Assembly: GCA_025558095.1 (NCBI GenBank)
Contig: JAIVFI010000004.1
Coordinates: 248,001-312,000 of the forward strand
Length of the DNA stretch: 64,000 nucleotides
Source of the DNA: Hyaloraphidium curvatum SAG 235-1
Taxonomy: Eukaryota > Fungi > Monoblepharomycota
Direction: 5' to 3'
Positions 38,004-52,000 of the stretch are shown one piece after another. Positions within the stretch are counted from its first letter, which is position 1; each line of letters begins with the position of its first letter. The translations under genes and the position numbers were made by a program. A model generated the notes under the pieces. That model was not told where the DNA came from and did no database searches. It saw only the letters and a list, made by a program, of their open reading frames with translations.

Positions 38004-39225
38004 ATGGACGGGCTGGCAGAAGGCGCCGGCGACATCGTCGCCCCCGTTCCCCTCCCGGCCTCCGTCGCCCAGAAGATGGCCTCGGCCTGCCTCGGCGCCG
38101 TGCTCACCTCGCTGGTCGTCACGCCCTTCGACGTCGTCAAGACGCGCCTGCAGGCCGGCCGCGCCGTCGCTGGCGGGGGCGGCTACGGCCACCTGCAGGT
38201 GCACGAGTGCTGCCGCGAGGTGTTCTTCGGGCAGCCCGTGGTGTGCAGGTTCCCGGCGCCGGCGGTGGCGCTGGACGGCGCCGCGTGCGCGGGGAGCATC
38301 GCCGTCGGCGCAGAGGCGGCGTCGGCGCGGCTGTTTACGGGGACGCTCGAGGGGATGGTCAAGATCGTGCGGTACGAGGGCGTGCAGAGCCTGTGGAGCG
38401 GGCTGTCACCGACGCTGTACGTGTTGCTGGCGTGCAGCGGAGGACTACCGGAGATCTGATCTATTGCTGGTTGCCCGAACAGCCTCATGCAGGCGCCGGC
38501 GACGGTCGGGTACTACCTCGGCTACGAGTTCATCCGGGACCGGCTCGTGGCGCGGTTCCGCGGCACGGGAATCGACCCCGACCACTATGCGCCGCTCGTC
38601 GCCGGCTCTTTCGCAAGAAGTGGGTCTATACGCTGCCGACTGCCCTTCCTTGGCCTCACCGTCGCCCTGATCCCGTGATCTCCACCAACTGGTTTCGCCA
38701 GCCATCGCAGCGACCGCCATTTCCCCCATCGAACTCATCCGCACGCGCGTGCAATCCTCCTCCCAGCCCCTGCGATCCGTTCTCGCCGGCGTCCGCGCCG
38801 AGGCCGCCCTCAACGGGCCCCGCTGGCTCTGGACCGGCCTCGCGCCCACCCTGTGGCGGGACGTCCCCTTTTCCGCGATCTATTGGTTCGGCTACGAACG
38901 GACGAAACGATATTTGCTCGGTCTGCCAGCGTACCAGCGCGGGGGCGTGTGGGGCGAAGGCTGGGCGAGCTTCCTCGCCGGCGCCGCTTCCGGCTCCCTC
39001 GCCGCGGTGGTGACCACGCCCTTCGACGTGGCCAAGACGCGGAACCAGATCGGCGAGGGGCCGCAGCCGGGGATGGTGGCCATCATGCGGGCGATCGTCG
39101 CCGCGGAGGGGTGGGCCGGGCTGATGGCCGGGTGGACGGCGAGGGTCGCCAAGGTGGCGCCGGCGTGCGCGATCATGATTTCCACGTACGAAGTGGGGAA
39201 GAGGATGGCGGGCGGTTTGCCGTGA
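38004..39225 (+). CDS. Mitochondrial carrier, SLC25A39/40 (Mtm1)-type
   Basis: TPFDVVKTRLQ, LWSGLSPTL, SPIELIRTR, RDVPFSAIYW, TTPFDVAKTR, KVAPACAIMISTYE; 2 introns. Confidence 0.92.
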
Positions 39226-39422
39226 CTGGATCGGGGGGATCGGGGGCGGGTGCGCGAACCGGGAGCGGGAATCGGAAAGGTGGACCTGCTAGAGTGGCTA
39301 GATCTGACCGCTGGCATAGCATGAATCTGCGTCTGTACATATCAGCTCTGACACTGCGACACGACATTCATCAATCTTGACCCCAGCCCGTGGTTAAGCC
39401 CCACTACGTCCCCGATCCCAAG

Positions 39423-40289
39423 TCATTGGCCCTCGCCCTTCTTCCCCGTTTCCCGCGCGCTCTTGTCCCACCTCGCCCAGGTCCTCGACAGCCCCCTCAC
39501 GTCGTCCCACACCTCCCCCAACCAGCGCTTCCAGAGCTCCCCGCCCCTCTTCACCATCTCGGCCGCCTTCCCCCCGTCCGGCCACCCCTCCCCGCGGATC
39601 CCGAACCCGTCCTCTGCGATCCGTTTGAGCAGCGCCGCGGCGCGCCCCGAGTCCCACGAGGCGCGGAACCGCTCCGCGAACCGCAACGCCGGGGCCGCGT
39701 GCTTCTCGGCGAACGCGCGCAGGTCCGACACCGCGCCCGGCAGGAAATCGTCCCCCGGCGCCGACTGCTGGAGCTTGGTCGGCGGAGCGGGGGCCGTGAT
39801 CGTCTGCGGAGCGTGCTTGGGCACCAGCGTGCGGAACCGCACCACGATCGTGTCCTCCGTGATGTCCAGGCATTCCGCGCCCTCGGCCGGCGTCCCGGGC
39901 GGCTCGCGCATGCCCCACGCCTGGCCAACCATCGCGTCGACCGCGGAACGCTGCGTCACGGCGGCGCGGAAGGGGAGGAGCGGCGGGGCGGCGCCGGGCG
40001 GGCGCTCGCGGAGGGCGTCCGGGCGGCGGAGGAAGCACGTCTGCTCCACACGCAGCGCGGCGCCGATCTCCATTGTGGCCGAGAAGCAGACATCCCCGGC
40101 GGGCGGCCTGAAGAGCCGGACGTGCGGCGGCGGCGGGCGCGGCGCCGCGAGGAAGCGCGCCGCGGAATCGGCGGCCGCCGCCGCGGCGGGCGCCGAGAAG
40201 CCGTCGCGCTCGAGCTTCGCCCGGAACGCCGCGCGGAAGGCCTCGATGTCGGCCGCGCTGGCGGGCGGAACGCCGCCTGGAGGCTCCAT
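39423..40289 (-). CDS. Hypothetical protein (~290 aa, intronless)
   Basis: Open frame from MEPPGG with protein-like composition; no recognisable motif. Confidence 0.55.
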   Translation of the reverse strand: MEPPGGVPPASAADIEAFRAAFRAKLERDGFSAPAAAAAADSAARFLAAPRPPPPHVRLFRPPAGDVCFSATMEIGAALRVEQTCFLRRPDALRERPPGAAPPLLPFRAAVTQRSAVDAMVGQAWGMREPPGTPAEGAECLDITEDTIVVRFRTLVPKHAPQTITAPAPPTKLQQSAPGDDFLPGAVSDLRAFAEKHAAPALRFAERFRASWDSGRAAALLKRIAEDGFGIRGEGWPDGGKAAEMVKRGGELWKRWLGEVWDDVRGLSRTWARWDKSARETGKKGEGQ

Positions 40290-40461
40290 GTGTGCTGCGA
40301 GCGCTACTGCGACTGATGCCCGCGCTGATGCGCGCCCGCGCGCGCAGCTAGCACGCGATCGATCTCGGTTCCGCGGCCAGTTCCGCGAGGACGCCGGAAC
40401 GCCGCTCCCCTGGAATAGCCCTCCACGGAGCACTCATATTCACTCCCGAGCCCGTGTCGTG

Positions 40462-40935
40462 ATGGCTGCGCTGCAGGGCTACGATGGCTACCCTCCCGAG
40501 CCGTGCACGGAATGCCCCGAGTGCGACAACTTCCTAAAAGGCAGAGTGATCAACATCTGCGACTGGTGCGGCCATAATGCCAGTGTGCACAAGCCGAACC
40601 AGCAGGCGGCCGGTAAGATTCCCTGCTCGGCGCGTCTCCTCGCGCTTACCTTCCCAGGCCCTTCACACATTCCTGCGTTCAAGTACCATGGAATGCCTCC
40701 ACGACCAGGCCTTGGACCGCAAATGGGCCAGCAGGCACCCAAGCCGCCCGCGCCACACTCCGTGTTCCGGACCGCGATGGCTGCGCCGACGGGCTACGAC
40801 CCGAGTGGCTACCCTCTCGAGCCGTGCACGGAATGCCCCGAGTGCGACAACTTCCTTGAAGGCAGAGTGATCAACATCTGCGACTGGTGCGGCCATAATG
40901 CCAGTGTGCACAAGCGGAACCAGCAGGCGGCCGGT
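40462..40935 (+). repeat. Near-identical duplicated coding module (40462-40614 and 40777-40935)
   Basis: Both copies begin ATGGCTGCG, encode CTECPECDNFL.GRVINICDWCGHNASVHK.NQQAA and end at an equivalent splice donor; only a few nucleotide differences in the core. Confidence 0.92.
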
Positions 40936-43204
40936 GAGTGGTCTGGCTCGCGTATCTCGGGCCGGTGACATCAAGCCGTCATCCTCTCCTCTCCAGTAAT
41001 GTCGTACAGACCGGCCGCTTCCGATGCCTGGGTTCTGCGCTACGGGCTTGACGCGCAGATGAAGCTTCGCGCGGATTGCAGGAACTGCGACTGTGCGGTG
41101 TACGCGCGGCAGAGCATGGGGAATGGTTGCGGGAACCCGAAGTGCCGCCACCTCTCGACCGATCACCGCCGTGGGATCATCTCCCGCAGTACAGCATTGT
41201 GTGCATTGACCACGCTGCACCTTAGAGGTCATTGAGTTCTGCGAGATCGACAGACCCTACTACGAGTTCAGCAATTCCTACGTCTCCCCGTTCCTCGACG
41301 CAGAGGGCAAGCAATGGGCGACTTCGGAGCACTATTTCCAAGCGCGCAAGTTTTTTCCACACGCACCCTGGTTGATGGAGCAGATACGGAGGCTGCCGAC
41401 TCCGCGTGATGCGTTCGAGCTCGCTCAACAGCACCGGGCGCAGATGCGGCCCGACTGGCATCAAGGAGAGTCCCTCAAAGTCATGAAGGAAGCCGTGCAC
41501 CGCAAATTCGTGCAGAACAATGAGCTCCTGGTGAAGCTTCTGGACACGGGGGACGCGTACATCGTGGAGCACACTACCAATGACGCGTACTGGGGAGACG
41601 GAGGCGGCAACGGCCGTGGCCGCAACGAGCTCGGGAAGGCGCTCATGCAACTTCGAGACGAGCTCAATGGAAGGGTCCGCCAACCGATCAAGGATCCGAC
41701 CGCGAGACCGCCGGAGCCCGACCGGCGCCAGGAAGCAGAAACTGAGGCGCGGCGTCGCCGGGAAGAAGAGCTGACGCGCGAGCACCAAAGGTTGGAGTTC
41801 GAGCGGCTGCGGGCGGCGGATCAGGCTCGGGAGGCCGAGCGAGCGCGTATAGCAGAGGCCGAGCGCCAGAAGAAAGATGCGGAGCAGGAGGCGGCACGGC
41901 TGCAGCAGCGCGAGGCGGACAAGGCGGAAGCCCGCAGGAGGCACCAGCAGCTGGCCGACGAAGCTGCCCGCGTGCGGGAACAGGAGGCGGAGGTGGCCCG
42001 CCGCATGGAGGAGCTCCGGGTTCGGGAGCAGGAGGTGGAGAGGAGGAAGGCTGAGGTTGAGGAGATGGCCAAGCTCGCCCCCCTTTTGCGTGCAACGCCC
42101 TCCTCGGACTCCTCTGAGGCAACCAAGCTCCCCTCGGAACCCTCCCGATCGGATGAGGCGACTAAGCTCCCCTCGGAACCCTCCCGATCGCGTGCTTCCT
42201 CGGGCAGCGCCAAATCCGACCATGCGGCCTTCCTCTCCAAGCTCCGCATCACGAAGGACGAGGTGGCTTACTCCACCGACGCCACGGCAGTTCTCGGCGA
42301 GGGCAGCTTCGGCATCGTGTACCGCGGCCTGCTCAGAGGCGCGACGCGGGTTGCCGTCAAGGCGATCAAAGGTGACGTGACCCCCGAGACGGTGGCGATG
42401 TTCCTCAAGGAGATCGCGGTGTGGGACGGGCTGAATCAGCGGAACGGTGAGCCCTCGAGCCGTCTTTCGCCATCACGGGCTTAATCTTCCCCGCAGTGCT
42501 TCCGCTCCTGGCGTTTTGCGAGTCCCCGCCCCTACTGATTTCGGAGCTGACCGAGGGCAGCATGCGCTCCCGACTGGACGCGCTGCGCTGGGACCAGGCC
42601 GTTGGGCTCAGGTACCTTCGCGGGGTAGCCGCAGGGATGGCCTACCTGCATTCCTACAAGGTGCTCCACGGGGACCTCAAGTGTGCCAACATCATGATCG
42701 GTGGGACTGCCGGGCGCATCTCGGGTCGCTCATCTCATCCGGGCAATGGCAGACCACGACATCCCCAAGATCGCCGACTTTGGCCTCGCCAAGGTCCGCT
42801 CCCACCTCTCCCTCGGCTCCACCCGCGGCGACGGCGATGCCACCGGCGGCGGCGGCGGCACGCCCCCGTTCATGGCCCCCGAGCTCTGGCGCGGGGGCAA
42901 GCTCCGCACACCCGTGGACGTGTACGCGTTCGCGATGGTGTGCTACGAGGTCACCGACGAGGGAGGATACCCTTTCGAAGGGCTGTGGATGGCGGCAGTG
43001 GGTGGTCCTGCACGCCGGATTTGATCGATCACTGGAGTTCTTTTCCTTTGTAAGGTCAGCGAGGCCGTCCTGCGTGGGGACCGCCCCGAGCGCCCCGACA
43101 ACGCCGATGACAAGATGTGGGCGCTCATGGAGCGCATGTGGGCGCAGAGCGCGGCCGACAGGCCGACGTTCGTCGAGGTCTGCGCGGAGATGGAGCGGTG
43201 GTAG
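40462..43204 (+). CDS. Fusion protein: Cys/His repeats - NADAR (YbiA/RibX) - coiled coil - TKL-type protein kinase
   Basis: Phase-compatible GT-AG introns 40613-40657, 40934-40996, 41189-41225, 42447-42496, 42701-42752, 42998-43054. NADAR motifs FSN, SEHYFQARK, EHTTNDAYWG, GRNELGKALM. Kinase motifs GEGSFG, VAVK, HGDLKCAN, DFG, MAPE. Confidence 0.85.
42114..42190 (+). repeat. 39-bp in-frame tandem repeat (EATKLPSEPSRS x2) in the kinase linker
   Basis: Two copies of aagctcccctcggaaccctcccgatcg, 39 nt apart. Confidence 0.85.
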
Positions 43205-43234
43205 GCATCAAGCTGTTGCTCGCCGGCGGGGTCC

Positions 43235-43800
43235 GGGGTTCTTGGAGAGGGCGGGTTTTGGCCTCCTGCGACGCCGATCCTGCACCTTGACGTAAGGACG
43301 ACAACGTGCTGATCGACGAGAACGGGGTCGCCAAGATCTCGGATTTCGGGATGTCCAAGATCCGGGCCACGGCCTTTCTACACTCCACGAAGCGTTCAGG
43401 AGGGACACCCGTCTTCACTTTCCCCCGAAAGTGGGATTGCCCCCCGAGCTCTTACGGCCATCCCGATCACTGACCGCCCCTTCCGCCCGCTCAGGCGTCG
43501 CCGCCGCGACCCAAGCCCGGCACCGCCACGGATCTTTACGCCTTCGCCATTGAGCTCCTCTCCGAAGACGATATTTTCCTCAGGGACCGGCTCATGGACG
43601 AGGAACTGATGGTCCCTGGGCACGGCATCGATTTGGAGCCCTTCGGCGCGCGTCTGCGGAGCGACCCGGCGTTCAGGCCCGAGCGGCCCCGTGGGGTACC
43701 GGACGCGACATGGGAGCTGATGAGGAGGTGTTGGGCGATGTATTCGGGGAGGTCGTGGCTGATCCTCCGGAGCACCGGCCGATCGCACGGAACTGCCATC
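43235..43800 (+). pseudogene. Fragmentary second TKL kinase domain
   Basis: Disjoint pieces VLGEGG.., DNVLIDENGVAKISDFGMSKIR..GGTPVF, ATDLYAFAI, RPERPRGVPDATWELMRRCWA in different frames; VAIK and HxD segments not found; in-frame stops immediately upstream of the DNVLID segment. Confidence 0.7.
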
Positions 43801-43944
43801 CAGACGGAGGGTCAATTCCATTTCCTGATAGATCATTACATATGCTTATGCGAACAATGGTCTTGTGCTCGCCGGGCGACGAAGAAGATATCAATCGTAC
43901 GCGCAGCCAAACCCCACCCAGATGTCGGCCGTACCGACGCAGCT

Positions 43945-45717
43945 TCATTTCTTCGGCAGCTTCGGTTCCGGCAGATCGGCTTCGCCTTCCGACTGTCCGT
44001 GAACCGGCGCCTCAACCATCGCCCCTCTCCGCAGCCGCCCCGCCGCCGTCGCGCAGGTCCTGGAGCAGTAGTTGTACCCCTGAAGCTTCGCCCGGGTCTT
44101 GCACTGAGGGCACGCGATCTCCTCGGGGAGCTGCTCCCGCTGCCGCCTGTCTTCTCCCGTCCCGCCACCGAACGCCTCGAGCGCATCCCGTAGGCGCTCC
44201 TGGAGCGGGCCGTCGCTTTCCCCAGCAGCGGAAAGCAGCGTTCGCACGGCTTCCGCCATCCGTGCTTCGCCCTCGTCGAGGAGATCCGCGTAGGTCGGAT
44301 CGAGCAGGAAGGACGAGACGTCGGCAGCAAGGAAGCCCACGCGATCCAGGAACACGTCGAGCAGCCTGGCCGCCCGCGCGATCGCAGGGCCGTCGACGCC
44401 CCCAGGCGGCTGTGGTGCGAGAAAGACAAAGTCCAGATCGTCCCCCCACAGCTCCTGGAGCAGTAAATCGTCGAACAACTGCACCGCCGTCCCGATCGCC
44501 GCCCTCGTCCCTTGCCCGTCAGCGGCCGGCCTGCGCGCCCGGCGCACGCCGTCCACGAGCCGGTGGAACGTGTCGTCGGCGAGCGAGTACCCGACAAACA
44601 GCATGTGTTTGGTGATGAGCATGGCCTGGACGATGCCAAAGAGCGCCGTGGCGCGCTCGGGGAGGCCGAGGTAGTCGGCCCGGGTGAGCACCATGTCGCC
44701 GCGGGAGATGTCGCCGTGGAGCTTGAGCACCCACCGGCCCTCGGGCCCGATGGGCTCGTAGGGCAGCACGGCGACCTTGCGGCCGCCGGAGCGGCATGCA
44801 TCCTCGTAGAGCGTGTCGTAGTTGGTCGTGACCGCCTCGCGGGCGCCGAGGCCGGCGAGCAGCGCGTGGGCCAGGGCGTGGCGCTCCGAGCGTACGAGGT
44901 CCGCGAGCGCGGAGCGGTAGTTTGCATCGTCCTGGAATTTGCGGGCTACGAGGAGGGCCTGGTCGCGCACGTCCAGCGCGCGAAGGCGCTCCCGGTAGGA
45001 CGCGTCCATGCCCAGCGGGGCGGCGAGCTGCTCGATCAGCGCGTTCCACATCGGCAGGCCGGCCCCGGCGCTCACGCCGGCGCCGAGGAAAAGCACCAGG
45101 TCGCGGCGCTGGGCTGTGCCGGCGAGCCTTTCCGCCTGCGCATTCAGCGTCTCCGATCGCTCGCCCATGTCCCACCGCTGTGCATCGGGCGTCTTCTGCC
45201 TGGCCCGCTGGGCGGCGGCGTAGCCCACGGGACCGAACGCCACCAGCACCACGTCGACGCCCACGTCGCTTGCGGCCTTTGCCAGCCTCTCCACCAGCAC
45301 GGCATACACGGCGCCCTTTCGGCCCGCCATGCCGCCCGCGCCGGTGCCGACGACGTGCACGGCCACGCGCGGCGGGGGGCCCGCCGGTCTCTCGGCGTCT
45401 TTTGCGTACGCGGCGACGAACTCGGCGGCCCCGTCCGCGTACCATTCCGGGGGCCGGTTGCTGTGTCCCACCGCCCCGATCCAAATCGCCGGCGAACGCG
45501 GCCCGCCCGGCCGGAGCTGGAAGCACCGCACAGCATCGACCCAGCCGGCCGGCGGCGTCACGTCCGCGGGCAGCCGGCACTCGTCGGGCGCGAGCCCGAG
45601 CGCTGCGCGCCACCGCGGCGTGATGCGCAGCCCGCGGTCGGACGGCACGAGCACGGCGTCGCACACGAGCCGCGTGAGGTCGCCGTCGACGATGAAGAGG
45701 TGGCCGGGCGTCGCCAT
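43945..45717 (-). CDS. Macro-like + SIR2-like (SIR2_2, NADase-type) protein with C-terminal Zn finger
   Basis: GDLTRLVCDAVLVP and VAVHVVGTGAGG (Macro-like); LVLFLGAGVSAGAGLPMW, TTNYDTLYE, VLKLHGD, MLFVGYSLADDTF (SIR2); CPQC..YCSRTC; intronless 590 aa. Confidence 0.88.
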   Translation of the reverse strand: MATPGHLFIVDGDLTRLVCDAVLVPSDRGLRITPRWRAALGLAPDECRLPADVTPPAGWVDAVRCFQLRPGGPRSPAIWIGAVGHSNRPPEWYADGAAEFVAAYAKDAERPAGPPPRVAVHVVGTGAGGMAGRKGAVYAVLVERLAKAASDVGVDVVLVAFGPVGYAAAQRARQKTPDAQRWDMGERSETLNAQAERLAGTAQRRDLVLFLGAGVSAGAGLPMWNALIEQLAAPLGMDASYRERLRALDVRDQALLVARKFQDDANYRSALADLVRSERHALAHALLAGLGAREAVTTNYDTLYEDACRSGGRKVAVLPYEPIGPEGRWVLKLHGDISRGDMVLTRADYLGLPERATALFGIVQAMLITKHMLFVGYSLADDTFHRLVDGVRRARRPAADGQGTRAAIGTAVQLFDDLLLQELWGDDLDFVFLAPQPPGGVDGPAIARAARLLDVFLDRVGFLAADVSSFLLDPTYADLLDEGEARMAEAVRTLLSAAGESDGPLQERLRDALEAFGGGTGEDRRQREQLPEEIACPQCKTRAKLQGYNYCSRTCATAAGRLRRGAMVEAPVHGQSEGEADLPEPKLPKK

Positions 45718-45912
45718 GGCTCGGTGTGTCTCCCAGCGTTAACGAGTCTAAGCATCACGGCGCCATCAACCCGCTAGACCCTGATGCACCCTGATCGGCC
45801 ATTCGAGTTAGAGCAGCGACACTCTCATCCGGAGCTGCAGGTGTCCACGTTGCAGCCGATCGCCCAGAGTCGTCTCCAAAAGAGCAACATTACGATTCCT
45901 TACACATCTCAA

Positions 45913-46489
45913 CTAAGAAACGGACCAGTCGGCCGATATCGTGCACTCCCCCACGATGTTGCCAATGTTATCCGGGACAAAGAGCAGCGCGTTGAGCGAG
46001 TAGTTGCCCCGCTCCGTCCACTCTTCCGGGTACTGTTCGTGCGCAGTCAACCCGGCAATTCGCATCAGTTGTCTGCCCAGGGGCGGGGGTAGCCAAGCAA
46101 CCCACAATGACCTCATTCACAGCAAACGCACCCCAGCTGAACGTCCCCAGCTCCGACGCCCCGACGCTCCCGTCAAACAGCGAGGTATCCCCGCGGCGGA
46201 TGGAGACCGAGACGCTGCAGCGTTCCAGGAATACGTTGTCGGTGGGGAGGTCGGACCATGTGACCGTGGCGCGCACAGGCTGGCCCTGCGGGTATCTGTC
46301 AACTGTGCGATGTGCGGGCGCCAAGATCGCGCGTGTGATCTGTCGCACCGGGACGGGGGGGTTCGTTTCGCAGGACACCTCGATGGAGTAGTTCTTGGTG
46401 AAGCTGGGCGGGTTGTTCCCGGAGAGCGGCCGCGACGTGAACTCGTTGAACGTGAAAGTCCCGAAGCCGCGGACGGCGCCGACAGACAT
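45913..46489 (-). CDS. Small beta-rich orphan protein
   Basis: ORF MSVGAVRG..AVNE can splice (GT..CAG, ~46033-46110) to YPEEWTERGNYSLNALLFVPDNIGNIVGECTISADWSVS*. Confidence 0.55.
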
Positions 46490-46559
46490 GGCGCGACAAT
46501 CAGTGCGAAGGACGACGCGTGACGAGCGCGGCTCTCAGTCTAATAGCGGCGTTGTCTCG

Positions 46560-46856
46560 AATCTCGGCACACGCGAGGTGTGGTCCGCCGGACGCGGACG
46601 CGGCAAAATCTCCTTCGGCGGCAGAGTGGAAAGAAGTCCGAGGTCTGCAATCAACGCCGGCGGCCGGTAGAAGCTCCCGATCATGTTCTTCCCTGCAGTA
46701 TGTTGACGCCCGTCTTGCCGCCCACCGACAAATCGATCATGGAGGAGCGTTGTCGGCACCTGAACGAAATCGATGCCGCGCTGATCGCAGCCGCGAACCC
46801 TGCATGTCGTTATCGACACCGCCTTCCAACACGACCACGAGGGCGCCGCGGTCGAA
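46560..46856 (-). pseudogene. aroB: Decayed partial copy of 3-dehydroquinate synthase (aroB)
   Basis: Aligns by eye to 56306-56585 (e.g. gtggaaagaagtccgaggtc, ggtagaagctcccgatcatgttcttccc); encodes [14 protein letters not shown] and [10 protein letters not shown] with frameshifts and an insertion. Confidence 0.9.
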
Positions 46857-46888
46857 ACCTTCGTTGCCGATCCCGATCGCCCTCCATT

Positions 46889-48760
46889 TCACGCGTGCAG
46901 CATCGCCGACTGCAGCACCACTCCGACCGTCTGCGCGCCGCCCCCGGGCCGGTACTTGGCGTCCACGTTCTGGCACAGCACGTGCAGCCTCGGATCCCTC
47001 CCCAGCCTGTCCACCAGCTCGTCGAACCTGACCCTGTGCGGATCCTCCGCCAGCGCGTCGACCACGGCCACGGTGCACATGCCCTGCGACCGGCGGCCCC
47101 CGAGGTTCATGTCCAGCCCGGGGCCGACGTTGCCGATCAGCGCCGTGCGCGGGGGCAGGTCCGAGGCAACGGCAAAGGTGAAGCAGCCGTCGAGGATGAC
47201 GAGCTTGCGGCAGCGCAGGTCGCCGAGCGCGGGGAGCATGGCCGAGGGCTTGAGGAGGCCGCCTTCGACGACGAGGCTGCCGTCTTCGGTGCCGTGGCCC
47301 GAGTAGTGCAGGACGAAGAGGTCGTCTTTGCCGAGCTGGCCTCCTTCCTGGGCGATGGCGGCGCGGATGGCCTTGGGCTTGGCTTCCCTGCCGAAGAGCT
47401 TGGTGGTGGTGAAGCCGCGCTTCTGCAGTGCGGAGCGCATGACGTCGAGGTCGTGCTCCGGGCCCTGGAGGTTCCCGCCCGAGTGGCCGACGAGCAGGGC
47501 GCGGCCGCGGCCGGGCTGCACGGCGACGGACAGGCGGAACTTTTCGTTGCCGCCCAGGGTGATGACGGAGCCGTCCTTGAGCGGGACGTGCTTGCCCGGC
47601 TGCGCTTTGGTGCCGTCGACCAGGGTCCCGTTGGACGAGTTGAGGTCGACGATGGAGAAGCCGTGCCTGCCCTTGGCATTCTCGGGCGGGTACAGGAGCG
47701 CGTGGTTCCTGCTGATGCGGATGTTGTCCGAAACCATGATGGCCAGCTGGGCGTCGCGGATGTTCCCCGACAGCGCGCGCGCGCCGTGGTCCTCGACGCC
47801 CTCGGACCTGCCGAGGTGCACGACGCAGTCGACGGTGAACTCGGGCCCGCGCGGGTTGCCCGACGAATCGAGCTGCCTGAGCTTGCCGACGGTCTCGCCG
47901 GCGCGGGCATGCACGGGCCGCGGCGGAGTCGGCGACACGGGCCTGCCCGAGCCGAAGGCGTCGAACAGCTTGCGCACCTCGGGGCTCGTGGCGACCTCCG
48001 CGGCGGTCCTGCCGGCCTTGTTCCTGCGCCTGACGTCGACGCGGTCCGTGCGCGAGAGCAGCAGCTTGACGGCGACGTCGTGGCCGTTGCGGCTGGCGAC
48101 CATCAGGCCGGTGTTGCCCTCGAGGTCGACTGCGTTAACGTCGACGCGCGAGCTGCCGAGCAGCAGCAGCAGCACGTTTGCTGCGTCGCCGTTGAGGCAG
48201 GCTGCGATGAAGCCGGTGTCGCCGGCTGCGGTGTGCACGTTGACGTTGACGCGGCGATCGGCCAGCAGCAGCGCGACGACCTCTGAGCGGCCGGTTGCGC
48301 ACGCGGCCACGAAGGGCGTGTAGCCGCCGTCGTCTGCCTTGTTTGCGTCCGCGCGGCCGTCGAGCAGCAGCGCGCCGGCGACGTCCCCGTGGCCCTCCTG
48401 CGCGGCGACGAACAATGCCGTGCGGCCGTCGGCGTCCGCCGCGTCTGCGTCGACGCGGCGATCGGCGAGCAGCGCGCGCGCGGCGTCCGCGGCGCCGAGG
48501 CTGCACGCGACGAGCAGCGGCGTGGCGCCGCCCGGCCCGGCCGCGTCGGGGTCGACGCGGCGATCGCCCAGCAAAACACGCACGGCGTCCGCGCTGCCGC
48601 CCATCGCCGCGTAGTGCAGCGGCGTCGCGCCGTCGCCGTCGCGCGCCGCGGGGTCGACGTCGGGCCGCGCGAGGAGCTCCCGCATCCGCGCCACATCGCC
48701 GCTCGCGCTCGCCTCGAACAGCTTGAGCGTCTTGGTCGGCTTGGACCCGTTGTTGCCCAT
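46889..48760 (-). CDS. Ankyrin repeat - FHA - caspase-like (peptidase C14) protein with N-myristoylation motif
   Basis: MGNNGS start; ~7-8 ankyrin repeats (GATPLHYAA, GRTALFVAA, GNTGLMVAS); FHA LGRS..ISRNHA..SSNGTLVDG; caspase RALLVG, HYSGHG, VILDGC; intronless. Confidence 0.88.
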   Translation of the reverse strand: MGNNGSKPTKTLKLFEASASGDVARMRELLARPDVDPAARDGDGATPLHYAAMGGSADAVRVLLGDRRVDPDAAGPGGATPLLVACSLGAADAARALLADRRVDADAADADGRTALFVAAQEGHGDVAGALLLDGRADANKADDGGYTPFVAACATGRSEVVALLLADRRVNVNVHTAAGDTGFIAACLNGDAANVLLLLLGSSRVDVNAVDLEGNTGLMVASRNGHDVAVKLLLSRTDRVDVRRRNKAGRTAAEVATSPEVRKLFDAFGSGRPVSPTPPRPVHARAGETVGKLRQLDSSGNPRGPEFTVDCVVHLGRSEGVEDHGARALSGNIRDAQLAIMVSDNIRISRNHALLYPPENAKGRHGFSIVDLNSSNGTLVDGTKAQPGKHVPLKDGSVITLGGNEKFRLSVAVQPGRGRALLVGHSGGNLQGPEHDLDVMRSALQKRGFTTTKLFGREAKPKAIRAAIAQEGGQLGKDDLFVLHYSGHGTEDGSLVVEGGLLKPSAMLPALGDLRCRKLVILDGCFTFAVASDLPPRTALIGNVGPGLDMNLGGRRSQGMCTVAVVDALAEDPHRVRFDELVDRLGRDPRLHVLCQNVDAKYRPGGGAQTVGVVLQSAMLHA

Positions 48761-49065
48761 CGCGGTTTGCTGATGACTGATTGCGAGCACCGACGATGAG
48801 GACGACGTCGAGGCGGTGAGACTGATCGCGATCGCGGGGAAACTCCAGCACCCACCGCCTTCCGCCGATCTCGACGTAGAGGCACTCGAGGCAAGACCTA
48901 TGAAGGAGCAGTTCACTCTCTTTCGCGTTCGCGTTATCACTCGCAGCAGTGGCGGCGGGTCCAGACCGTCTCCCAGCCGCAATCGCGATCGATGCCTTGA
49001 CTGACTGACTGACTTTGCCCTGACTTTACCCACGACCGTTGCGGAGCACATCCGGCCCGCCAGAC

Positions 49066-52000
49066 ATGGACGGCCGCGGGTACGGCTTGGACGGTTCGGT
49101 AGCCGTGCCGATGTCCGACCTGGACTGGACGTCGAACCCGCTCGCCGCGCCGTTCGCCCCCGTGGCGCCGCGCGGCACCCCGTTGGCCGCGGACGGCCCC
49201 GGGGCCGGGAGCCCCGCCCCGGCGCTGGCGGCGTACGCTCCCGTGCCGCCCCGCGAGCCCCGGCGCTACGCGCCCATCACGGATTTCCCCAAGCGCTCCG
49301 TGACCACGAAGAAGATCCCGCTCACCGAGAAGGGCAACCTCCAGAGTGAGTGCTCCCCGGCGCGGCCCCGGCCCCGCAGAAGCGGGATTGGCATCGAGCG
49401 TAATGCTCAACCGCGTGCCAAGTCGACCTTCCGGTGCCGACCGACGTCCTCAACTACGTCAGCATGGACCCAAGCAAGGAGTTCACGCACATGCGGTACA
49501 CGGCCGTGACATGCGATCCCAACGACTTCGATCACAAGGGGTACACACTGAGGCCCGTTACTTACGAGCGAAAAACGGAACTGTTCATCGTCGTAACCAT
49601 GTGGGTACCGCAGGCATAGAAGCGGCGCGCCCGGAGAAGCTGCACGCTGATCTTGATGCTCGCTCGCCGCCACCAAGGTACAACGAGGCTCCACAACTCT
49701 TCATCAATACGATGGTAATGGCGTTTGCCGTCCCACTGGTGTGAGGCGGCTCACGTCGATCGTCGCAGCACGCCATAACTACCAACGTCAAAAACTTCAT
49801 GGCCCGAGAGAGCTCCCAGACCTGGGGCGAGGACGCGTGGCAGAAGATCGTGATCTGCGTGGTGGCAGACGGTGCCGATTACATCCACACCAGAACGCGG
49901 GACCTGCTTGCCCTCATGGGCTGCTACCAAGACGGCGTGATGAAGACAAAGTTCGGGGACGAGGACGTCACGGGCCATTTGTTCGAGTACACGACGCAGG
50001 TGGACCTGGATCGGAACGGGAACGAGCTCATTTGCAATTCTGGACCGCCGGTGCAGATGATGTTCCTCATCAAGGTTGGCGCCCGGACGCGGGTCATCGT
50101 CGAGAGTGCGCTCACCTCTCCAACAGCAACAGAACACCAAGAAGATAAATTCGCATCGCTGGTTCTTCAATGCTTTCTGCCCCGTCTTGAATCCCAAAGT
50201 CACCATGCTCATCGACGTTGGCACACGCCCGCTGGATACGTCGCTCTATTACCTCTGGAAGGTCTTCGACAGGCATCCCAATGTTGGCGGCGCCTGCGGG
50301 GAGATTCGGGCCGATATTGGCACTGGGTGGTACAAGTGCTTCACCAACTGGTTGGTTGCGGTTCAGAACTTTGAATGTGCGTCCTGCGAGCGCCCGATTT
50401 ACATCCGGGCACTACTGATCGCACTGATCAACAGACAAGATGTCCAACATCCTGGACAAGCCGCTCGAATCCTCTTTCGGCTACATCTCCGTGCTCCCCG
50501 GCGCGTTCTCGGCCTACCGGTACGAGGCGCTGAAGTCCCTTGATGACGGCACCGGACCGCTCGCATCCTACTTCCTGGGCGAAGACATGCATTCGGGAAA
50601 GGTTGAGGGCGGCGTTTTCAAGAACAAGTGGGTCCGCCACCCCATGCTCACCAACCCGCTCTCATGCCTGATTGTCCCCGCCACGCCTTAGCATGTACCT
50701 TGCCGAGGATCGCATCTTGTGCTTCGAACTCGTCGCCAAACGCGGTCAATCCTGGACGCTCCGCTACGAGCGCCGTGCCGCAGGCGTAACCGACGTGATC
50801 GAAGAGATACCGGAGCTGCTGAAGCAACGCCGGCGGTGGCTCAATGGGTCCAACTTCGCGGCGTTCTACGCGTTGCTGAATTGGGGAAGGATTTGGAAGT
50901 CGAGCCACTCGACCGGGAGGAAGATCGTTTTCATGCTTGAATGGGTATACCAGCTTCTGGTGATGCTTTTCAGCTGGTTCTCGATTGTAGGGCAGCTCAT
51001 CCGTCACATGCGGCACCTTTCGTTGACTGACGAGTTTGCCGCAGGCAAACTTCTTTCTGGCTTTCTACTTCCTCATGGAAGCAACGGTTCCTCAAACCCT
51101 TTCTACGCCCGGTGGCACCCTCCAGGGCGCGTATCGACCGCCCTTCTACGAAGGCTCGGAGGTCGTCTTCCAAGTCTTTACGTGGATCTACGTGCTGCTC
51201 ATGCTCGTGCAGCTTATCATCTCGCTCGGTAACAGCCCGAACGGCTCAGTGAACGTGTACCGGTTCCTTGTCATTCCCCTCTGGGTGCTCATCATGGCAA
51301 TCATCCTGGCTCTCATCGGCAGCAACCTGTACTTTGTTTTCAGCACGGTTGCTCAGCCGGGCGTCAATGTCGGGCAGCTGCTGCTGAGCGTGGGTCATCT
51401 GCTCGCCGTCGTATGTCTTGGACCCCAAGATCTGACTTTCTGTCGCACCAGAGCCCGAACTTCCAGGCCACCATCCTGGGTCTGGGTTGCACCTTCGGCC
51501 TGTGGATCCTCGCTTCGATCCTATTCCTGGACCCGTGGCACATGGTGACATGCTTCCTGCAGTATCTCCTGCTAATGCCATTTTGGGTGAATGTGCTGCA
51601 GACCTACGCCATGTGCAACACGAACGGTCAGTCTGGAATCGTGGATCCGGTGGATCCGCAGGCACATGGCTGATGCATCCACGAACCAGACGTTTCCTGG
51701 GGCACAAAAGGTGACACTGAAGCTCCCAAGCACGACGCTGACAATGCTGTGAAGCTCACAGGGCCTGCTGACGGCCGTGAGGCGGAATTTAGTGTGCCGG
51801 ATGCAAGCAAGAAAGACGAGGCCAATGCTATCTACCGGGCTCTGTTGGCGGAAAGCCAGACTCTGAACGATAAAGATAGGAAGGACGAGTCTCCCGAGGG
51901 CAAAGAGAAGGAGGCGAAGAAGAAGGCTGAGGCCGAGAAGAAAGCCAAGGAGGAATATGCAAAGGCGGGTGTTTGCCTCGGATCCTCCACGGAAAGCACG

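Follow-up and report, generated by a model that had tools for sequence, protein, structure and literature searches.

The 64,000-nucleotide stretch of Hyaloraphidium curvatum SAG 235-1 DNA analyzed here (contig JAIVFI010000004.1 of assembly GCA_025558095.1, positions 248,001 to 312,000; hereafter the window) carries, on its minus strand at 43945-45717, an open reading frame (ORF) of 590 codons that joins a macrodomain, a SIR2 domain and a cysteine finger. This Macro-SIR2 gene is integrated in the eukaryotic chromosome and transcribed, and our analyses support its horizontal acquisition from an actinobacterial, Acidimicrobiia-like lineage, followed by gain of its C-terminal tail as a host module. 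On balance, we lean towards a reading in which a single actinobacterial gene was integrated, transcribed and fitted with a host finger, its product being an NADase effector that would be gated by an ADP-ribose ligand of the macrodomain.

The original prediction, made from the sequence of the window alone, had described a very GC-rich ORF without naming its strand; the local GC content is 0.698 (70%), and every motif quoted at the time is found in it, namely GDLT (residues 12-15), CDAVLVP (19-25), VGTGAGG (123-129), TTNYD (297-301), KLHG (332-335) and CPQC-x10-YCSRTC (536-555). The ATG at 45715-45717 matches the starting point of the bacterial homologues, and a search of the whole genome (G000; 31.9 Mb in 55 contigs) returned the gene as a single copy. 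An AlphaFold2 (AF2) model of the full-length protein reached a mean predicted local distance difference test score (pLDDT) of 88 and a predicted template-modeling score (pTM) of 0.87, and was confident across residues 1-520.

Chromosomal integration and bacterial origin

On its 957-kb contig, the locus is found some 292 kb from the start, with spliced eukaryotic genes on both sides, and its flanks encode a NADAR-kinase, an Ank-FHA-caspase protein and a kinesin. Spliced RNA from the same organism (run X1) gave GT..AG joints of the plus strand at 42446-42495, 42998-43054 and 43431-43494, and CT..AC joints, corresponding to minus-strand introns, at 46033-46105 and 46285-46347. One 2,357-nt RNA contig is colinear with 43157-43430 and 43495-45555, its sole joint being the plus-strand intron 43431-43494 of a neighboring kinase remnant. 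In this contig, the depth of which is comparable to that of the neighbors, a spliced intron of the host is physically continuous with codons 55-590 of the Macro-SIR2 ORF, which are themselves free of joints. The suggestion that the gene is intronless thus holds for codons 55-590, while codons 1-54 lie outside the main contig. In a DNA run from a separate study (X2), short exact contigs cover the gene and its flanks at an even 4.4-6.7x (about 5x). Because the RNA contig runs on to a host intron and the DNA depth is equal in gene and flanks, bacterial contamination or mis-assembly, which a bacterial-type and intronless gene might otherwise bring to mind, is excluded for practical purposes; the position between spliced genes and the host-specific finger in frame likewise speak against it, and we give it a negligible probability.

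A word-indexed protein search returned 1,307 proteins at E <= 0.001. The best 120 of these are about 515 residues long and share 38-52% identity with the window protein, with query coverage ending near residue 520. Every protein with a named source among these 120 (E below 1e-93) is bacterial, from Mycolicibacterium, Aquihabitans or metagenome-assembled genomes of Actinomycetota/Acidimicrobiia, and no named eukaryotic protein occurs among them. The closest of them share 45-52% identity with the window protein and come from bacteria or from metagenomes with a bacterial context; the top match (51% identity) sits on a compact, bacterial-type contig beside a sigma-70 gene and an SF1 helicase. In a scan of one genome per prokaryotic species, 139 matches were confirmed, and the best 80 loci, which were kept for further analysis, are overwhelmingly from Actinomycetota (Acidimicrobiia, Mycobacteriales, Pseudonocardia and Micrococcales). 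Actinomycetota also make up the nearest ESM Atlas clusters, and a related bacterial cluster carries the Pfam Macro and SIR2_2 domains. The bacterial origin proposed earlier is thus upheld by more than 1,300 homologues, among which all named or context-checked ones are bacterial, and by the presence of a single copy between spliced host genes.

Phylogenetic analyses gave a consistent placement, as had been anticipated if the gene was transferred from bacteria. In a FastTree phylogeny of 197 rows, the protein was nested in Actinomycetota. A quick IQ-TREE tree of 102 rows under a mixture model placed it in a 19-row clade (support 95) within larger, actinobacterial sets of 74 and 77 rows (97 and 95), with Micrococcales and Pseudonocardia falling outside these sets. 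A more careful tree of 49 rows under LG+G4 recovered a 36-row set (100/99) and the 19-row clade (93/87), and a tree of the SIR2 domain, rooted on distant SIR2s from viral contigs, recovered a 21-row clade (96). In all four trees, the protein lies several nodes deep among Acidimicrobiia-like and uncultured sequences. We also carried out an approximately unbiased (AU) test on the 49 rows under LG+G4, with a group that was chosen after the tree was known: forcing the protein outside 35 inner bacterial rows cost 38 log-likelihood units, with a borderline p of 0.058. Even under this constraint, the protein would fall between two bacterial groups. To avoid a transfer from bacteria to a eukaryote, the root would have to lie on the branch of the window protein itself, which appears implausible given one eukaryotic sequence against more than 1,000 bacterial ones.

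Of the 110 alignment columns with at least 90% conservation among 60 bacterial homologues, the window protein retains 106, and in four regions, including residues 1-129, its identity to bacterial sequences equals the level seen among bacteria. Despite a long terminal branch (0.6-0.85 changes per site in the 102-row and 49-row trees), frame and motifs are intact, which argues that purifying selection has acted on the two-domain body as a whole. Codon usage and GC content at third codon positions were considered as transfer signals and found uninformative, as host and donors are both GC-rich; codon usage is slightly nearer to host genes (r 0.94) than to bacterial genes (r 0.89). A viral vector was also considered and set aside, as viral contigs hold only distant, SIR2-only relatives with 23-31% identity.

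Domain architecture and bacterial neighborhoods

The sequence and fold comparisons support assignment of the SIR2 domain to the defense-type SIR2_2/SIRim class of predicted NAD+ hydrolases, in line with the suggestion that it is of the NADase rather than the deacetylase flavor. Pfam SIR2_2 (PF13289) matched residues 294-397 with an E value of 2.6e-24 (86.4 bits against a cut-off of 24.5); PF13289 was the only SIR2 model reported by Pfam, with no match to the classical SIR2 model, and the domain does not fall among canonical sirtuins, SirTM included. The PADLOC ThsA1 model matched at 4e-23, in addition to Dsr1; in the ThsA, Dsr1 and Dsr2 models (PADLOC, NCBIfam), the alignment is confined to the SIR2 part. 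The closest solved sequences in the Protein Data Bank (PDB) are the defense NADases KomC, DSR2 and ThsA, and the same three proteins head a Foldseek search with the full-length model (E about 1e-12), with target TM scores of about 0.7 to DSR2 SIR2 chains. The FLGAGVSAGAGLP loop (a GAGxS NAD-binding motif), Asn299 and His334 are all present in columns that are invariant in 61 sequences, and His334 aligns with the histidine mutated in the deposited DSR2 H171A and KomC H146N entries. A sirtuin zinc module is absent, as had been noted, C308 being the sole cysteine within residues 196-520. From these features, the 590-residue protein would be expected to act as an NADase.

The N-terminal part gave no Pfam match (Pfam Macro included) in its first 200 residues when searched as a single sequence, even at E 10. 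However, an AF2 model of this part, built from 64 homologues, adopted a macrodomain fold with a pLDDT of 91.5, and Foldseek matched it to TTHA0132, macroH2A, YmdB and PARP14 macro 3. The macrodomain-like fold, at first a guess from motifs, is upheld by sequence comparison: a family profile matched the macrodomain of Capsaspora macroH2A1.1 with an E value of 5.3e-7, the GDLT..CDAV..PT motif aligning nearly letter for letter. Conservation extends to Asp20, which corresponds to the adenine-contacting aspartate in DAV, and to the GTGxGG loop, while a GGG loop 1 is not recognizable, and the sequence contains neither the NAAN nor the GGG motif found in hydrolytic macrodomains. MacroH2A1.1 binds ADP-ribose without hydrolyzing it, so that a sensor fits better than an eraser, and the domain is most likely of the binding, macroH2A-like type.

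Bacterial homologues stop near residue 515-525 of the window protein, and none of 196 contains a CxxC...CxxxC motif in its C-terminal part, in agreement with the expectation that they lack the finger. A search with the tail alone against a collection of 5.8 billion proteins (candidates of 325-1030 residues) returned only the protein of the window itself. Within the genome, only three true copies of the finger were recovered by each of three approaches (protein search, profile search and degenerate DNA pattern): one here and two in a single gene on contig 6 (G000:C6:875058-875675; L002:937-2928). The product of that gene comprises RNI-type leucine-rich repeats (LRRs), both of these fingers, a coiled coil rich in E/R and a kinase. 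Thirteen positions are identical across the three copies (CP.CK...KL.G..YCSR.CA), and the coiled-coil-kinase half of the contig-6 gene resembles the NADAR-kinase that adjoins the Macro-SIR2 gene. The absence from bacterial homologues and the restriction of paralogues to a host LRR-kinase gene support the earlier view of the tail as a host module, gained after transfer. The four cysteines suggest that the finger binds zinc. Assignment to the MYND, HIT or FCS types was considered and rejected, as matches to zf-MYND (E 0.45), zf-C6H2 (E 0.17) and Rubredoxin (E 0.054) fell far short of the cut-offs and only four cysteines are available; a profile search of the finger against the PDB gave no significant match.

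To place the bacterial homologues in context, we clustered and annotated the neighboring proteins across the 80 loci. Partners encountered repeatedly are an NrtR-like Nudix-wHTH regulator, ARPP-1 and a fusion of ADP-ribosylglycohydrolase with a dual-specificity phosphatase (ARG-DSPc), along with TY-Chap2, NERD-UvrD, SF1 helicase-RNase H, PLD-ResIII-DUF3427 and calcineurin-like phosphoesterases. Among the 52 loci whose flanks each extend for 5 kb or more, at least one of NrtR-Nudix, ARPP-1 and ARG-DSPc lies within 8 kb in 26, and all three in 14 (examples from the set L003-L082 are L046:5400-12000 and L078:8000-15600). Fusions to GIY-YIG or REase-ARP nucleases, the latter typical of ARG-centric systems, occur in some homologues, with REase-ARP in one of them. 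As to the defense islands proposed as a check, the genes directly adjoining the homologue in 34 loci (two per side) include components of BREX, Mokosh, Shango, Dpd, type IV restriction and NERD-helicase systems. TIR was not among the families matching at least two of 136 bacterial neighbor proteins, and none of 82 bacterial loci contained a NADAR gene. In an Arthrobacter locus, a 2,227-residue ORF lies immediately upstream of the Macro-SIR2 homologue (L061:1355-8038, minus strand).

ARG-centric systems were described by Iyer, Burroughs, Anantharaman and Aravind in 2022 as predicted to counter viral ADP-ribosylation in ADP-ribose-sensing conflicts; they are defined by the absence of coupled ADP-ribosyltransferases or sirtuins, with Macro and NADAR as accessories, and the frequent SIR2_2 partner is not mentioned in the available sections (PMC9503650). 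The bacterial context thus points to a role in ADP-ribose-centered conflict, with the SIR2 domain as a probable effector, and the donor is a large, unnamed actinobacterial Macro-SIR2_2 family that is tightly tied to systems defined as sirtuin-free.

The window protein shares features with several known systems, none of which it matches fully. With the actinobacterial Macro-SIR2_2 proteins (annotated as "SIR2 family protein", about 515 residues), it has in common the full two-domain body at 40-52% identity and the family-conserved residues, Asn299 and His334 included; these proteins differ in lacking the 70-residue tail with its finger, in residing in defense or ARG-centric loci and, in some cases, in being fused to nucleases. 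About half of the bacterial homologues adjoin genes of ARG-centric systems (Nudix transcription factor, ARG and R-P phosphatase, ARPP, TY-Chap2, restriction endonucleases, helicases), although such systems were selected as lacking coupled sirtuins (PMC9503650), and the eukaryotic flanks lack these partner genes. DSR2, DSR1 and KomC provide the best solved sequence and fold matches for residues ~196-500, but use large C-terminal sensor domains or partner proteins instead of a macrodomain. The SIR2 domain also matches ThsA models and structures, and a ligand sensor gating an effector, as in Thoeris, is by analogy the logic that we propose. A macrodomain is part of type II ThsA (bioRxiv 10.1101/2024.09.18.613514). 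However, type I ThsA is SIR2-SLOG and type II combines a transmembrane segment with Macro, both with an adjacent TIR gene (ThsB), whereas the window protein has no SLOG and its macrodomain is N-terminal to SIR2. Membership in Thoeris was rejected, as there is no SLOG, no recurrent TIR neighbor in bacteria and no TIR gene in the host.

In eukaryotes, SIRim proteins have been acquired several times from bacteria, and their clade C, which spans 83 species and branches with ThsA-like proteins, typically has SIRim fused to a macrodomain (Bonhomme et al., bioRxiv 10.1101/2024.09.18.613514). A bacterial-derived eukaryotic combination of Macro and SIR2 is therefore already published, and this kind of gene is known. 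Like clade C, the window gene pairs a defense-type SIR2 with a macrodomain in a eukaryote, is read as a bacterial acquisition and encodes a candidate immune protein; it differs in that its nearest relatives are actinobacterial, and a finger tail is not mentioned in that paper. Because no named eukaryote is found among the close matches and the protein is nested in Actinomycetota, our data suggest an acquisition separate from, and later than, that of clade C. FAM118A/B (SIRanc), which are related to antiphage sirtuins (PMC12700824), belong to the same broad SIR2_2/SIRim class; they have no macrodomain, represent an old opisthokont lineage and are not among the close matches. What we add to this picture is the donor family with its ARG-centric context, the finger shared with an LRR-kinase, the NADAR neighbor and direct RNA and DNA support.

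Proposed mechanism and rival explanations

Under the reading that we favor, the macrodomain would bind an ADP-ribose-containing ligand, such as free ADP-ribose, an ADP-ribose conjugate or a PARP product, and ligand binding would release or assemble the SIR2 NADase. The SIR2 domain might then consume NAD+ as a stress, immune or cell-death effector, and the finger would probably serve to anchor it to a partner or pathway of the host. The gating by the macrodomain that was proposed originally is rendered more plausible, we infer, by the macroH2A-like motifs and the ADP-ribose-centered bacterial neighborhoods. The genome contains two NADAR, two SIR2_2, three PARP-domain and three canonical macrodomain loci, and no TIR genes were detectable in it; as the host lacks TIR genes and has PARPs, PARP- or pathogen-derived ADP-ribose appears the likeliest ligand. 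Should gating of the NADase by the macrodomain prove true, the protein would offer a simple one-chain model of ADP-ribose-triggered NAD+ depletion. A bacterial defense-type NADase with RNA and independent DNA support, under constraint and remodeled by its eukaryotic host, would in addition make the claim that eukaryotic immune parts derive from antiphage genes testable in one more lineage.

In a farther-reaching version, the protein would deplete NAD+ as the executioner in a module for eukaryotic immunity or cell death that is assembled from bacterial and host parts and responds to ADP-ribose signals, for example from host PARPs or pathogen ADP-ribosyltransferases. In this version, the finger would wire it to LRR- and NADAR-type TKL kinases, it would work jointly with the adjacent NADAR-kinase and Ank-FHA-caspase genes in a co-regulated island, and in bacteria its relatives would be the missing suicide effector of ARG-centric systems. 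We hold this extension to be doubtful.

Several observations weigh against ligand gating of a transferred NADase. The AU test falls short of formally rejecting a placement outside the inner bacterial clade. Binding of ADP-ribose is not assured, given the missing GGG loop 1 and the failure of Pfam Macro to match. The drop in RNA depth and the gene model starting at Met130, both described below, raise the possibility that the main sampled product misses most of the macrodomain. The finger matches no Pfam or PDB family significantly, and the AF2 model of the tail is of low confidence (pLDDT <50). A Thoeris-like signal is unlikely in a host without TIR genes. Finally, the adjacency of the NADAR-kinase was spotted post hoc, which qualifies the estimate of about 0.3% for chance proximity within 5 kb, calculated for some 10 such genes in 32 Mb.

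Among the alternatives, one retains both domains and changes their roles: SIR2 would ADP-ribosylate a target and the macrodomain, instead of sensing a ligand, would remove the mark or a self-modification, as in macrodomain-linked sirtuin operons. The ARG-centric survey names Macro-sirtuin as a coupled transferase-hydrolase system (PMC9503650), and ADP-ribose-removing enzymes (ARG, phosphatases) are bacterial neighbors. However, the domain in question is SIR2_2, the solved relatives of which (ThsA, DSR2 and KomC) were deposited as NADases, and the macrodomain most closely matches the non-hydrolytic macroH2A1.1 and lacks the NAAN and GGG motifs; we consider such a writer-eraser pair unlikely. 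Another alternative dispenses with the macrodomain, which would be a truncated relic in a main product of 461 residues starting at Met130, with SIR2 otherwise regulated or unregulated. The gene model on record (P0001) indeed begins at Met130 and has 461 residues, and the main RNA contig ends at 45555, with a depth of about 20 over 45546-45742 against 230 downstream and essentially no RNA over 45743-45898. With a transcript start near 45555, the first in-frame ATG would be that of Met130 and most of the macrodomain would be lost. Yet assembled contigs cannot define RNA ends, and low-depth RNA does cover 45556-45742. Moreover, codons 1-129 are open, begin with the bacterial start, retain all family-conserved residues and show bacteria-level similarity, a degree of conservation that is hard to explain if they are untranslated. 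We therefore consider the 590-residue model more likely, and production of mainly the 461-residue form improbable.

The gene could also be a neutral passenger, recently transferred and transcribed by chance, with no function in the host. It is present in a single copy, and no other database entry holds an orthologue with the tail. Neutrality is difficult to reconcile with a branch as long as that found here alongside an intact frame and near-complete retention of conserved columns, with a host finger gained in frame, with codon usage slightly nearer to host genes and with an RNA contig depth on a par with the neighbors; we see only a slim chance for it. Vertical inheritance as a member of the published clade C, in place of a separate transfer, draws on the existence of that broadly distributed clade and on an Ascomycota macrodomain cluster that is a weak neighbor in the Atlas (score 0.76). 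It appears very improbable in view of nearest relatives that are bacterial or metagenomic with a bacterial context, the lack of a named eukaryote among the best 120 matches and the nesting in all trees.

Gene coordinates and genomic surroundings

Table 1. Positions of the Macro-SIR2 gene, its domains and associated features in the window
Feature	Position	Strand	Basis or remark
Whole ORF	43945..45717	-	590 codons + stop; open frame of 597 aa; single copy in 31.9-Mb genome
Macrodomain, residues 1-182	45172..45717	-	GDLT..CDAVLVP strand-loop and GTGAGG phosphate-loop-like motif
SIR2_2 (SIRim, defense-type) and helical extension, residues ~196-520	44158..45132	-	PF13289, PADLOC, PDB, Foldseek
Asn299 codon (TTNYD), expected catalytic Asn	44821..44823	-	Invariant in 61 aligned sequences
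His334 codon (KLHG), expected catalytic His	44716..44718	-	Invariant in 61 aligned sequences
Lineage-specific C-terminal tail, residues 521-590	43948..44157	-	Without bacterial counterpart
Four-Cys finger, C536-x2-C539-x11-C551-x3-C555 (CPxCK...KL.G..YCSR.C)	44053..44112	-	Pattern match; 3 genome copies
Met130, possible alternative start, removing most of the macrodomain	45328..45330	-	461-aa gene model on record (P0001)
Stretch under one 2,357-nt RNA contig (run X1)	43157..45555	.	0 mismatches, 0 gaps

The NADAR domain of the neighboring kinase gene, one of just two NADAR loci in the genome, is encoded at 41225-41680 on the plus strand, and the Macro-SIR2 gene has its 3' end about 2 kb away. 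As the bacterial loci lack a NADAR neighbor, this adjacency would be a eukaryotic arrangement and not the result of co-transfer, and it hints at a clustering of NAD/ADP-ribose conflict genes in a eukaryote. Co-transfer of bacterial neighbors in general was rejected, with no NADAR gene in the 82 loci and no remnants of neighbor genes in window positions 39000-52000. Upstream of the NADAR exon, at 40480-40960 on the plus strand, two near-identical Cys/His-rich modules (EPCTECPECDNF..GRVINICDWCGHNASVHK) are found, the motif of which is distinct from the Macro-SIR2 finger. The only other SIR2_2 locus in the genome is a weak match (27 bits) at G000:C21:128577-128783 on the minus strand.

At the 3' end of the Macro-SIR2 gene, convergent ends overlap over 43157-43944, where one RNA contig spans from the kinase remnant (plus strand) into the Macro-SIR2 ORF (minus strand). 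On its other side, an RNA contig spanning 45899-47760 (minus strand) joins the 3' part of the Ank-FHA-caspase ORF onward through the introns 46033-46105 and 46285-46347, and the "orphan" ORF region 45968-46489 is thus part of the transcribed sequence in this contig. Exact 151-nt matches to the locus, 43394-43544 and 43690-43840, occur in two freshwater metagenome runs, so that the organism or a very close relative inhabits fresh water.

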